NCBI GenBank assembly: GCA_019828565.1
Contig: JAHDYR010000025.1
Span: 744,001 to 808,000, forward strand
Direction of reading: 5' to 3'
Length of the DNA: 64,000 nucleotides
DNA from: Carpediemonas membranifera BICM
Lineage: Eukaryota; Protista; Fornicata
A program made the translations under genes and the position numbers. The notes below the pieces were generated by a model. It made no database searches. It saw nothing but the letters and a program-made list of their open reading frames with translations, and was not told where the DNA came from. Shown here piece after piece: positions 41,775 through 54,010 of the stretch. Numbering within the stretch: position 1 is the first letter of the stretch; every line of letters begins with the position of its first letter.

Positions 41775-43866
41775 ATGCAGAATGCAGCAGATGAGACGAT
41801 TCCGCGCGTTGTACTTCCGCGAACAAGCTTGAAAAGCATCATAAGTATGGCTTCGATGGTATATTTACGCAGGAAGCATCTCCATCCCAGCACATCTCCA
41901 AACAGCCCTAGAATCCAACGGATTTGAGGACGTAGAGAGCATTCTCTGTGCCAGCACCGATAAGCTCCGCTATTCCCTCAAATGCACACGCACAGAGGCA
42001 GATACTCTGAAGACGGAGGTCTCCCGCGGCCTCCTCATGACCCACGAGTCCTTTGTCCGCGACTCCACCGCCCTCACGGCACTGGGCAGCCAGCCCGCGG
42101 TCATAAACCTCGGGGACAGCAAGATAGACAGTCTGATTGGCGGGCTGACGTGCGGCACGATCACGGAGCTGTGCGGGGAGGCGGGGACGGGCAAGTGTCT
42201 CGCCAGAGGGACGCCCGTGCTCATGGCTGACGGCATGTTCAAGCTAGTGGAGGCTATAGTGCCTGGGGACAGGCTGATGGGGTACGATGGCCATGTCGAG
42301 AGGGTGTTGTCTGCGGGGACCGGGCGGGAGGCCATGCTTAGGGTCTCTGGTGAAGAAGGAGTGGGATTTACGTGTAACATGTCGCATATATTAACCATAT
42401 CAGTGCATGGGCTGAGTCCGAGGGTCGAGTACTGCTCTAGTGCCGACTGGGCGATGACGGTTGTCCGACTCGGCAAGAACTCCTCAGGCGAGGTCACCAG
42501 TGCTACTGTTGAGACTACCCACTACAGCGCCGAGCAGGAGGCCTCGGCAGCAGCCGTGGACGCATCCCTGTCACCTGCCATTCTCACCGACGGCGCCCTC
42601 CTCGACATCCCAGCCCGTGTCCTGCTGGACGGTAGCAGGGTCGACCCCAGGGTGAGAGAAGCAGCGTGCATGGTCCACAGCGGCCTGATCTGGGCGTTCG
42701 AGGGCGACTGGGGCAGGGAGGCCCCGGCCATGTTTGCCGACGCACCCGCCAGACAGAAGTACCTCGAGACTGTGCTCAAGTCCCACGCGACTGTAGCCGA
42801 GTCATCTTTCGTGCTGAATGCCGCGGACCACGACACTCTGCTGAACATTCACACCATAGCGTTCATCGCCAGGTCTCTAGGACTGAAGGCTGTGTGTGAT
42901 GATGGTGGTACACTGTGCCGAATCTATGGACCAGATTCATCGCTTCCAGATCTCCAAAAACTATCATATCCAACTCAATCTCAAGATATGATCCGGACAA
43001 AAATCATATCTCTCGAGATCCTGCCCGAGGATGATTACTTCGGATTCACCATGACCGGCGCGACCAAGCGGTTTATTGTCACAGAATCCATGCTAGTTAC
43101 TCACAACACACAGTTCTGCATCCGGGCCGTCTCAGCCGCAACAGCCCAAGGCTACGGCGCCCTCATCCTGAACACCGAGGGCGGTCTGTGGCCTATTGAG
43201 CGGGTTCGACACGTGTCGACCCGGCAGCCGACGTATCATGAGCGGATGACGGGCCAGGCGCCCAGTACCCGGCCGGACGAGACCGACCCGCTCGACAGCG
43301 TCCTCATGCGGAACATAGCGAACGCCGAGGCTCTTGCCGCTACTGTGCTCGATATATTACCCACGGTGCTTCAAAAGCACAACATCCGACTCCTCGTGAT
43401 CGACTCGCTCGCTGCGGTCATCCCCTCATCGGGTGACCCGGCAACCCGAGCACAATGCCTCGCAGGGATAGGCGCCGCTCTCAAGCAGGCCGCACACGTG
43501 TTTCACGTCGCTGTTGTTGTCACCAACCACGCCCGAGACTACTTTGCCGACGAGGCCATCACCCCCGCCATCATCATGGGCCTGCCCGACTACTACGGCC
43601 AGCTCGCCGCGGCCAAGGACAAGCGGGACTCGGGGTATCGCCTCGTCACCCCGGCACTCGGCCCAGTTTGGTCTCATATGGTCAACGCGAGACTTATGTT
43701 GACTCGCACCCCGACCGGCGCCGGACTCAACCGGGAGTTACACGTGATACACTCTGACCGGGTGCCTGTGGGGTCGGTGGCAGTGACGGTCGACGAGAGC
43801 GGGTTTAAGAGCAAGGTGGAGGAGAGGGCTGTGGCGCCCGGGGCGAGCAGCCAGTGGATTTATTAG
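41775..43866 (+). CDS. Rad51 paralogue (XRCC3/Rad57-like) containing an intein; one intron (41845-41872)
   Basis: Splicing restores a Rad51-like N-terminal domain (ALESNGFEDVESILCASTDKL). Extein motifs: GGLTCGTITELCGEAGTGK|TQFC, ILNTEG, Walker B IRLLVIDSLAA, AVVVTNH and PALGPVWSHMVNARL. Start could be 41730. Confidence 0.9.
42196..43107 (+). mobile_element. Intein (304 aa, VMA/Hint type) with degenerate LAGLIDADG remnant
   Basis: Block A CLARGTPVLMADG, block B FTCNMSHIL, block F EDDYFGFTM, block G LVTHN followed by +1 Thr. Removal restores GTGK-TQ exactly. Confidence 0.96.
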
Positions 43867-44916: not shown

Positions 44917-45061
44917 TCTCGGAGCTTGCGCAAGTCGGGTTAAACTGCACATGATAAGAACGGTGGCATGAAGGGGTGTCAGCAGGGTAGCGCATGGCGA
45001 GGGATAGTCGTCAAGCCCCTTCTTCCTTCCGCAGAAAACCTGCAGAAAATTTGTCAGTTGC

Positions 45062-46401
45062 AATGCATCGCGTCCACATCCCGTTTGTGGCGCGTGCACC
45101 TCGCGTTGGTGGTTCTAACACAGGAGGTTCTCCCTAACGCTGACCACTTTCACATGAAGCTCCAACTTCTTCTTCTCCTCGTCGCTGCGGCTTTCTGCTT
45201 CTACAGACGCTCCACTGATTCCACCTTCGAGCAATTCGACACCAGCGAGCACCGCATCATCGGATTCGCCTCCCACACCGGCGGTGAGACCAACAAGGTC
45301 TGTGTGTACAACCGCAACGCCAACCAGATCGACTATGACTACGAGACGACTTTCTGGACGCCCAACCCCCTCGACGACGACTTCGGCAAGCACATGGCCA
45401 TCTCCGGCGAGACCATTGTCATCGCCAACGGCACGACTTCCTTCTCTGCTGACGACCAGGCCATATTCGTCCACAACCTCGTCGACGGAGCCTGGGTGCT
45501 GGATGCGATAATCAAGACCGGCAAAGCATGCGAGGCTCTCGACATCGACGGCGACACCATCATGCTCGCCTACATCGACCGTTTTGTCACGGTTGTCCGC
45601 GGCACCGACGGCTGGGCCCTCGGCCAGGTAGTCGCCCTCGGCGACTCCTACACTTGCTTCGCCAGCGGCAGCAGCAAGTCTGCCTCGCTCAGCGGCGACA
45701 TTATCGCCATCGGTGACTTCTGCGGCGACGTAGTCCGTGTCTTCCGTCGTGGCGACTCAGGCGACTTTGCCTTCGAGGCGACGCTCGCCGGCCCGGCCGA
45801 CAGTTACTTCGGCTACGCAGTCGACGTCGACGGCATCACTGGCGCCATCATCGCTGGTGGCTACAGCTACGGCTCTAACGCTGGCATCGCTCAGCGCTGG
45901 GACTTTGTCGACGGCGCATGGGCCAAGACATGGGAGAAGACCGGCGCCCACATCGGCGACAGGTGCGGCACGGATGTCGCCATATTCAACGGCGTCGGCG
46001 TCTACTCTTGCCCCGACGAGGCCAGCGTCAGCGATGGGACTGGTCTTGCCATCCAGGTGAATGCCCAGGGCGCATCCATGACCTACCTCCCCATCGACGG
46101 TGTCAGCTTCGGTGACTCGATGGCGTTCGACAACAACACGCTTGTGATGACTCGCTCGAGCTTCTGGACCCACGGCTTTTATGTCGAGAACTACGACCAG
46201 CCCAACTGCATGGGTCACACCGCCACGACGTGCACCGCCTCCTCTGCCGGCCGCACCGCTCTGGCTCTTGCCGGCGTCCTTGCTATGCTGGCACTCGTGT
46301 TCTAAGCATTAAACCTTGCCTGTATGTCGCTTGACTGTTGAACGCAATGCCACGCCGAGCCGGGCCTCCCGCACGCTGAAGGGAGGTGCCCTTCCACTGC
46401 C
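45062..46401 (+). repeat. 1.34-kb inverted duplication, arm A (partner 52672-54010)
   Basis: Near-identical reverse complement, including 5' and 3' non-coding flanks. Confidence 0.95.
45154..46305 (+). CDS. Secreted/surface FG-GAP-type beta-propeller protein, probable GPI or TM anchor
   Basis: Signal peptide MKLQLLLLLVAAAFC; repeats DFGKHMAISG, YFGYAVDVDG, RCGTDVAI and SFGDSMAFD; hydrophobic C-terminus. Confidence 0.8.
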   Translation: MKLQLLLLLVAAAFCFYRRSTDSTFEQFDTSEHRIIGFASHTGGETNKVCVYNRNANQIDYDYETTFWTPNPLDDDFGKHMAISGETIVIANGTTSFSADDQAIFVHNLVDGAWVLDAIIKTGKACEALDIDGDTIMLAYIDRFVTVVRGTDGWALGQVVALGDSYTCFASGSSKSASLSGDIIAIGDFCGDVVRVFRRGDSGDFAFEATLAGPADSYFGYAVDVDGITGAIIAGGYSYGSNAGIAQRWDFVDGAWAKTWEKTGAHIGDRCGTDVAIFNGVGVYSCPDEASVSDGTGLAIQVNAQGASMTYLPIDGVSFGDSMAFDNNTLVMTRSSFWTHGFYVENYDQPNCMGHTATTCTASSAGRTALALAGVLAMLALVF

Positions 46402-52671: not shown

Positions 52672-54010
52672 GGCGGTGGAAGGGCACCTCCCTTCAGCGT
52701 GCGGGAGGCCCGGCTCGGCGTGGCATTGCGTTCAACAGTCAAGCGACATACAGGCAAGGTTTAATGCTTAGAACACGAGTGCCAGCATAGCAAGGACGCC
52801 GGCAAGAGCCAGAGCGGTGCGGCCGGCAGAGGAGGCGGTGCACGTCGTGGCGGTGTGACCCATGCAGTTGGGCTGGTCGTAGTTCTCGACATAAAAGCCG
52901 TGGGTCCAGAAGCTCGAGCGAGTCATCACAAGCGTGTTGTTGTCGAACGCCATCGAGTCACCGAAGCTGACACCGTCGATGGGGAGGTAGGTCATGGATG
53001 CGCCCTGGGCATTCACCTGGATGGCAAGACCAGTCCCATCGCTGACGCTGGCCTCGTCGGGGCAAGAGTAGACGCCGACGCCGTTGAATATGGCGACATC
53101 CGTGCCGCACCTGTCGCCGATGTGGGCGCCGGTCTTCTCCCATGTCTTGGCCCATGCGCCGTCGACAAAGTCCCAGCGCTGAGCGATGCCAGCGTTAGAG
53201 CCGTAGCTGTAGCCACCAGCGATGATGGCGCCAGTGATGCCGTCGACGTCGACTGCGTAGCCGAAGTAACTGTCGGCCGGGCCGGCGAGCGTCGCCTCGA
53301 AGGCAAAGTCGCCTGAGTCGCCACGACGGAAGACACGGACTACGTCGCCGCAGAAGTCACCGATGGCGATAATGTCGCCGCTGAGCGAGGCAGACTTGCT
53401 GCTGCCGCTGGCGAAGCAAGTGTAGGAGTCGCCGAGGGCGACTACCTGGCCGAGGGCCCAGCCGTCGGTGCCGCGGACAACCGTGACAAAACGGTCGATG
53501 TAGGCGAGCATGATGGTGTCACCGTCGATGTCGAGAGCCTCGCATGCTTTGCCGGTCTTGATTATCGCATCCAGCACCCAGGCTCCGTCGACGAGGTTGT
53601 GGACGAATATGGCCTGGTCGTCAGCAGAGAAGGAAGTCGTGCCGTTGGCGATGACAATGGTCTCGCCGGAGATGGCCATGTGCTTGCCGAAGTCGTCGTC
53701 GAGGGGTTGGGCGTCCAGAAAGTCGTCTCGTAGTCATAGTCGATCTGGTTGGCGTTGCGGTTGTACACACAGACCTTGTTGGTCTCACCGCCGGTGTGGG
53801 AGGCGAATCCGATGATACGGTGCTCGCTGGTGTCGAATTGCTCGAAGGTGGAATCAGTGGAGCGTCTGTAGAAGCAGAAAGCCGCAGCGACGAGGAGAAG
53901 AAGAAGTTGGAGCTTCATGTGAAAGTGGTCAGCGTTAGGGAGAACCTCCTGTGTTAAAACCACCAACGCGAGGTGCACGCGCCACAAACGGGATGTGGAC
54001 GCGACGCATT
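52672..54010 (-). repeat. 1.34-kb inverted duplication, arm B
   Basis: Reverse complement of 45062-46401 with a few substitutions and one missing base. Confidence 0.95.
52768..53918 (-). CDS. Second copy of the FG-GAP-type surface protein (1-nt frameshift at G-run 53703-53706)
   Basis: Same protein as 45154-46305 except 4 versus 5 C in the NPLDDD codons. Confidence 0.7.

Follow-up and report, generated by a model that had tools for sequence, protein, structure and literature searches.

The P-loop has been called a hot spot for inteins, with independent invasions in RadA and RecA (PMC4513877). In Pyrococcus horikoshii (Pho) RadA, an intein with Cys1 and no working endonuclease interrupts the P-loop of this RecA-family ATPase (PMC4513877, PMC5238726); single-stranded DNA (ssDNA) binds the exteins, splicing becomes 46-fold faster and residue R503 is involved (PMC5238726). 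Among eukaryotes, non-allelic P-loop spread in an intein-rich nuclear genome has already been published for the metamonad Anaeramoeba, where related class 3 inteins with atypical N-termini (cluster 1) occupy the Walker A motif of non-homologous nuclear proteins, including kinesin, dynein and SNF2 (Gallot-Lavallee et al. 2023, PMC10710043). That paper gives four nuclear inteins per genome as the published maximum outside Anaeramoeba and raises the question of whether this genus is an outlier. Intragenomic transfer between unrelated nuclear genes has been reported for pairs of inteins, namely the fungal GLT/CHS pairs (Green et al. 2018, PMC5784728) and the SRP receptor/IF2 pair of Rhizophagus (PMC10710043).

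Here we describe an intein in a Rad51 paralogue of the fornicate Carpediemonas membranifera. With the VMA1 intein of Saccharomyces cerevisiae (PI-SceI/VDE, PF05203), its best match in sequence and structure, it shares class 1 chemistry, blocks A, B, F and G and the Hint fold; it differs in having Thr+1 instead of Cys+1, a GK|T instead of a GAFG|C site, 304 instead of 454 aa, a deletion of blocks C and D with a degenerate block E, and a Rad51 paralogue as host. It resembles the Pho RadA intein in its P-loop position in a RecA-family ATPase, in Cys1 and Thr+1 and in the want of a working endonuclease. However, no close relationship to that intein is detectable in sequence or fold, the host is a paralogue here and the main recombinase there, and it is for the Pho intein that conditional splicing has been shown. 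In contrast to Anaeramoeba cluster 1, the Carpediemonas inteins are class 1, VMA-type and belong to the Fornicata lineage; they may perhaps be nearer to Anaeramoeba cluster 15 (PMC10710043). Where the fungal reports concern pairs, inteins with up to 97% nucleotide identity sit in 10 host genes of Carpediemonas. We propose, with a probability of roughly 0.78, that the Rad51-paralogue intein is a copy left stranded by a mobile family of inteins that targets P-loops.

The intein and its host gene

The window analysed is a stretch of 64,000 nt (G000:C13:744001-808000) from an assembly of 24.24 Mb in 69 contigs. It includes the gene for KAG9393385.1 (P0001), a 687-aa C. membranifera protein entered in the database as DNA repair protein XRCC3, with the following features in window coordinates.

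41775-41844, plus strand: first exon of the Rad51-paralogue gene, opening with the ATG at 41775 (N-terminus of P0001/KAG9393385.1 matched)
41845-41872, plus strand: putative 28-nt GT-AG spliceosomal intron (P0001 model compared with the window)
41873-42195, plus strand: remaining N-extein, ending in the Walker A motif GEAGTGK at 42175-42195 (weak RAD51 matches in the PDB; same motif in orthologue P0007)
42196-43107, plus strand: 304-aa class 1 intein of the Hom_end_hint (VMA1/PI-SceI) family with a decayed endonuclease (Pfam, PDB, AlphaFold/Foldseek)
42196-42234, plus strand: block A including the Cys1 nucleophile (sequence comparison)
42364-42399, plus strand: block B, N61-x-x-H64 (same His in all 10 sisters aligned)
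42727-42732, plus strand: approximate junction of a deletion of about 90 aa, LAGLIDADG block C and block D gone (alignment with sisters of 399-401 aa; low-confidence loop 170-179 in the model)
42760-42789, plus strand: degenerate block E, YLETVLKSHA against LAGxxDxDG in active relatives (alignment)
43024-43107, plus strand: blocks F and G with the terminal His303-Asn304 (sequence comparison)
43108-43866, plus strand: C-extein, stop codon at 43864-43866 (Pfam Rad51; PDB XRCC3 and RAD51B, E 8e-7)
43108-43110, plus strand: Thr+1 nucleophile, in the C-extein
43390-43407, plus strand: Walker B motif LLVIDS, in the C-extein
43732-43734, plus strand: Arg equivalent to RAD51 R310 and RadA R503 (Dmc1 alignment)

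A preliminary description of this DNA had placed an in-frame insert of 912 nt at 42196-43107, and these coordinates are exact: the insert has 304 codons and lies between the Walker A Lys (ending at 42195) and Thr (starting at 43108). The gene start at 41775, the 28-nt intron, the partial deletion of the endonuclease and the sister inteins at the same motif (at least 11) were absent from that description. An orthologue from assembly GCA_002919055.1 (P0007, 53% identity) reads GEAGAGK|TQFCIQ and has no insert. The junctions were read directly off the precursor and orthologue sequences and, because P0007 lacks exactly this segment, both are fixed independently. Blocks A, B, F and G are present as had been claimed, block B with N61-x-x-H64 as in Sce VMA1 and block G with His303-Asn304, and the set of splice-catalytic residues is complete (C1, H64, H303, N304 and T+1).

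Profile and structure searches agree on the kind of intein. Pfam Hom_end_hint (PF05203) matches at 54.9 bits against a cut-off of 32.1, and the likeness to VMA1 noticed earlier is borne out by the PDB, where PI-SceI is the best sequence match (E 1e-7, or 5e-33 when the family profile is the query) and, together with fungal Prp8 inteins, the best solved relative. An AlphaFold model of the intein (pLDDT 81, pTM 0.75) has the VMA1 endonuclease (PI-SceI) as its top Foldseek match, at E 8e-16. Class 3 DnaB inteins are weak matches (E 0.06-0.1 in the PDB with the family profile), and a class 3 assignment was rejected on the canonical Cys1. The insert is a class 1, VMA1/PI-SceI-type intein at GK|T of a Rad51 paralogue. 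A Hedgehog or BIL-type Hint domain was rejected in view of the internal position, Thr+1 and the exactly empty orthologue, and an RNA intron was judged unlikely in view of the open frame, the splice-catalytic residues, the lack of GT-AG ends and the lack of a skipping joint. On the last point, a contig from a presumed RNA run crosses the 5' junction with 61 nt on the extein side, and no joint skipping the 912-nt insert was seen in the contigs of that run, which of the two junctions cover the 5' one. The depth of the run goes from about 6 to about 45 at a neighbouring gene, a transcriptome-like profile; the two runs used look like one data set. Since the insert interrupts the P-loop, ATP binding would have to wait for splicing, in agreement with the earlier suggestion that the ATPase is inactive before the intein is removed.

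The intein is probably splicing-competent but immobile, as about 90 aa including endonuclease block C have been lost. In the alignment with sisters of 399-401 aa, blocks C and D are deleted and the motif of block E is lost, so that the intein cannot home by itself; no Hom_end or LAGLIDADG Pfam match was found in the insert. In comparisons with the inteins of SMC6 and kinesin, dS is saturated and dN/dS lies near 0.1 for the splicing blocks and near 0.5 for the middle; across comparisons the ratio ranges from 0.09 to 0.20 in the splicing blocks and reaches 0.65 in the middle, all values being approximate as they come from a simple counting method. These ratios point to purifying selection on the splicing blocks and decay of the endonuclease and, together with the saturated dS, fit an old copy that has been kept splicing-competent. 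GC3 is 0.66 in the intein and 0.75-0.76 in the exteins.

What is the host protein? It had been called an XRCC3-like nuclear Rad51 paralogue, and the second half of that label stands. The Rad51 ATPase core (PF08423) scores over its cut-off, Walker A and B are present, and the protein is a Rad51 paralogue distinct from Dmc1/Rad51; elsewhere the genome also encodes two Dmc1-like proteins and a RAD51C-like one, all with empty P-loops. As to the first half, the searches favour neither XRCC3 nor RAD51B. With the N- and C-exteins used as separate queries, the C-extein matches XRCC3 at E 7.7e-7 and RAD51B at E 7.8e-7 in the PDB, orthologue P0007 matches RAD51B at E 2.4e-15 and XRCC3 at E 1.8e-13, and an Atlas search with the host gave a mixture of XRCC3 and RAD51B matches. 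Because the two score almost equally, the XRCC3 label rests on published annotation, in which Xrcc3 is listed for Carpediemonas (including C. frisia), Rad51B is not listed and the BCDX2 complex is absent in fornicates (PMC8516963). On these matches the host (43108-43863) may be RAD51B instead of XRCC3.

Related inteins in this genome and elsewhere

An intein-family search of the C. membranifera genome gave 17 N-terminal matches, 12 of them at GK|T or GK|S of Walker A in 10 unrelated host genes. The hosts are the Rad51 paralogue, SMC6, a kinesin (two copies), a 4961-aa RNF213-like ligase, an SRP-receptor GTPase, a DEAD-box helicase (two copies), an SNF2 helicase, an AAA ATPase, a Ski2-type helicase and a G-alpha subunit. 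Two of these names, RNF213-like and Ski2-type, are our reading of size and motifs. The five matches outside P-loops lie in VMA1, a P-type ATPase, a gene read as CoA-dehydratase activase and two stand-alone ORFs. At least 15 inteins in the genome are apparently complete, counting one nested in the Ski2 copy. Hom_end domains are already flagged in the database annotations of some hosts. The TIGR01445 and LAGLIDADG_3 profiles gave no matches in the genome and TIGR01443 gave two weak ones.

Beyond this genome, a profile search reached 18,797 proteins at E<=0.001. Among the inteins cut from the top database matches, 135 of 174 follow GK, a count biased upward by a query profile built from P-loop inteins. 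Both catalytic endonuclease acids are kept in none of the P-loop copies of C. membranifera, whereas both motifs are kept in 91 of 131 outside relatives. The Rad51-paralogue intein falls into a clade of 17 rows (support 100/99) with eight other C. membranifera copies and outside members. The latter include, from fornicates, a dynein intein (GCA_002919055.1, L064) and the kinesin and GET3/ArsA inteins of Dysnectes brevis (P0033, P0078) and, from metagenomes, P0037, P0042, P0002 and P0137, with eukaryotic myosin, ABC ATPase and AAA proteins as hosts. One clade member has intact endonuclease motifs, and its gene-dense contig looks viral to us. The nearest relatives of the Rad51-paralogue intein are the SMC6 group, with 41-42% identity and a common C-terminal signature; a quick tree groups it with SMC6/dynein (SH-aLRT 93), and a careful tree has a polytomy at this point, with a long branch of 1.74 changes per column for our intein.

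Occupancy of the hosts is reciprocal between the two assemblies. The Rad51 paralogue carries an intein in C. membranifera and has an uninterrupted site in GCA_002919055.1; dynein carries one in GCA_002919055.1, and the genome intein search gave no match in its 72%-identical counterpart in C. membranifera. From the sequences, gain here or precise loss in GCA_002919055.1 would fit the difference equally. No other intein-bearing Rad51 protein was found in homologue searches that were limited by length and by word. Among the database relatives, seven proteins (P0026, P0056, P0059, P0083, P0103, P0107 and P0128) have two inteins within a single Walker A motif, separated by only three residues (G|[TS]GK|T), and several further proteins have inteins back to back.

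Origin, spread and splicing

How did an intein come to lie in this gene? We suggest that the ancestral intein, which a virus may have brought in, had a LAGLIDADG endonuclease that was active and of low specificity; it would have cut Walker A-encoding DNA and been copied into the break by recombination on the short shared motif. The endonuclease would then have been inactivated in each lineage, because a promiscuous enzyme would cut many essential genes, and copies would have been retained in P-loops because only precise deletion restores the loop. Ectopic gene conversion has later homogenised parts of some copies. The Rad51-paralogue copy would be an old, degenerate one, translated as a 687-aa precursor. 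Self-splicing in the usual steps (Cys1 N-S shift, Thr+1 transesterification and Asn304 cyclisation) would then yield an ATPase of 383 aa with its P-loop restored. We favour a stranded mobile copy over a damage switch because a dozen related inteins share the same loop in unrelated genes, and in our analysis splicing is most likely constitutive and without a regulatory role.

A variant that overlaps with this scheme concerns the origin of the recent copies. The family might spread among P-loop genes without an endonuclease of its own, by ectopic recombination on short Walker A homology and possibly with help from the organism's unusual Dmc1-centred recombination. The full-length inteins of the SRP receptor and SNF2, unrelated genes, are 97% identical in nucleotides and have the same dead motifs; those of SMC6, kinesin and the RNF213-like ligase are 87-90% identical. 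Assembly polishing could partly inflate this near-identity. Over the first 200 nt the DEAD-box inteins diverge from the SRP-receptor and SNF2 copies by about 28%, beyond that by about 3%, and this breakpoint near nt 200 reads as a gene-conversion signature between copies. In 9 of 10 hosts the insert follows GGCAAG (P about 0.005 against a rough baseline, the codon usage of the window), and an active, intact P-loop-targeting endonuclease was not found in this assembly. The 97% identity with the same dead motifs, the breakpoint, the GGCAAG context and the missing endonuclease favour spread without an endonuclease, and the identities and the breakpoint count for the main scheme too. However, conversion between copies already resident explains the identity without new invasions, and an endonuclease that came in trans from a virus, or one since lost, fits as well. 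We hold such spread to be possible but rather unlikely. That the Rad51-paralogue copy is an old footprint of it is, in our estimate, equally doubtful; the variant says little on this old copy specifically.

The preliminary description had raised the idea of a domesticated switch that responds to ssDNA or damage. On the model of Pho RadA, extein-intein contacts would keep the precursor unspliced until ssDNA or damage set splicing off. That the Pho intein occupies the same site, with insertion into the P-loop and a T+1 nucleophile, is correct, and its 46-fold ssDNA response speaks for the idea (PMC5238726). The copy in Carpediemonas is moreover old (dS saturated) and immobile, yet retained; the equivalent of R503 is present; and Carpediemonas has been proposed to rely on recombination for replication (PMC8516963). 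The wider comparison speaks against a switch. Inteins of this family occur at GK|T/S in 10 hosts that are unrelated to one another, most of which have no ssDNA role and some no DNA role at all, and the closest orthologue, P0007, has no intein. Because the R503-equivalent Arg is equally conserved in this intein-free orthologue and in Dmc1, as throughout the host family, it gives no sign of extein-intein co-adaptation. The helix-1 contact R358 of RadA, as we take that motif to read, appears by eye to be Trp both here and in the orthologue, which also counts against a switch. That the copy has persisted is accounted for if only a precise loss is tolerated. The Pho RadA intein is absent from the PDB sequence matches at E<=10 and from the top 50 fold matches, so that the shared insertion site is convergent; on these grounds and on the careful tree, descent from the archaeal RadA intein was rejected. 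In these comparisons nothing sets the Rad51-paralogue host apart from the kinesin or G-alpha hosts, and we consider a switch improbable. It is less probable still that the intein splices poorly and that the gene is a pseudogene or encodes an unspliced, ATPase-dead fusion. The long branch, the large internal deletion and the lower GC3 would suit such a relic, and some Rad51 paralogues tolerate weak ATPase activity. Nonetheless, all splice-catalytic residues are intact in an open frame, dN/dS is low in the splicing blocks, the Hint fold is modelled with high confidence, and the exteins, with 53% identity to the orthologue, are conserved and are probably transcribed. Contamination or an assembly chimera might be suspected, as nuclear inteins are rare and the culture contains prokaryotes. 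We regard its chance as negligible, given a spliceosomal intron in the gene, a 1.02-Mb contig among eukaryotic genes, a contig of an independent assembly that spans the junction and related inteins in two other fornicate data sets.

Novelty and individual copies

Taken singly, the insert in the Rad51 paralogue is a known kind of intein in an apparently new host, and the picture at the level of the family is the more valuable result. The preliminary description knew of no intein in an XRCC3-type paralogue, and our literature searches likewise found no published report of inteins in Carpediemonas, in fornicates or in a eukaryotic Rad51 paralogue; this appears to be the first intein seen in the last. 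Inteins are unmentioned in the Carpediemonas genome paper and its supplements (PMC8516963), Rad51 and the P-loop are unmentioned in Green et al. 2018 (PMC5784728), and the main text of PMC10710043 names no Rad51-paralogue host. The P-loop inteins of Dysnectes brevis (P0033, P0078) and of GCA_002919055.1 (L064) are apparently unreported too. At least 15 apparently complete inteins here, together with relatives in Dysnectes and in the sister assembly, add a second intein-rich lineage of metamonads.

What are the implications of such a family? Near-identical copies, a conversion breakpoint and natural empty orthologues allow non-allelic spread and the P-loop hot spot to be tested directly in a eukaryote that can be cultured, and the conditional-splicing model from RadA becomes testable in a mesophilic one. 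If endonuclease-free spread were true, inteins would be moving among P-loop NTPase genes of an organism for which recombination-based replication has been proposed. In GenBank, the models of XRCC3, SMC6, the SRP receptor and others contain unrecognised inteins, and inteins that appear to splice in many P-loop contexts may help protein engineering.

Some individual copies deserve mention. A 348-aa intein (Cys to Gly-Asn, then Cys) is nested in block B of the P-loop intein of the Ski2-type helicase (G000:C6:863349-864392, minus strand; L058:4850-5893); the genome search with it returned itself alone, and it has no Pfam match. A complete 292-aa intein, 67% identical to the outer Ski2 intein, lies in a short ORF without a recognisable host (G000:C15:279763-280638, plus strand; L055). 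The VMA1 intein occupies the classical site (G000:C13:571020 onward, plus strand; L057:3021-4000), and since a short spliceosomal intron appears to split its +1 Cys codon, protein splicing would there depend on RNA splicing. On contig C8 (L050), a free-standing intein-like ORF ending in His-Ser-Cys-Gly-stop stands beside a gene with a related intein (G000:C8:701061 and C8:698305, both minus strand), and among the copies seen the intein of that gene alone has kept both LAGLIDADG motifs intact; we take the pair to resemble HO/WHO-type elements. The kinesin-intein region is duplicated in inverted orientation (G000:C63:831996-833191, plus strand; L053) with a 1-nt deletion near intein nt 1106 as the sole difference, the duplicate being a pseudogene or an assembly error. 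A 163-aa mini-intein lies at a non-P-loop site of the P-type ATPase (G000:C6:1605914, minus strand; L059:4927-5415). Downstream of the Rad51-paralogue gene, the window also carries an inverted duplicate of a secreted repeat-protein gene, in which the ORF at 52768-53679 (minus strand) starts with sequence found inside the ORF at 44968-46305 (plus strand).
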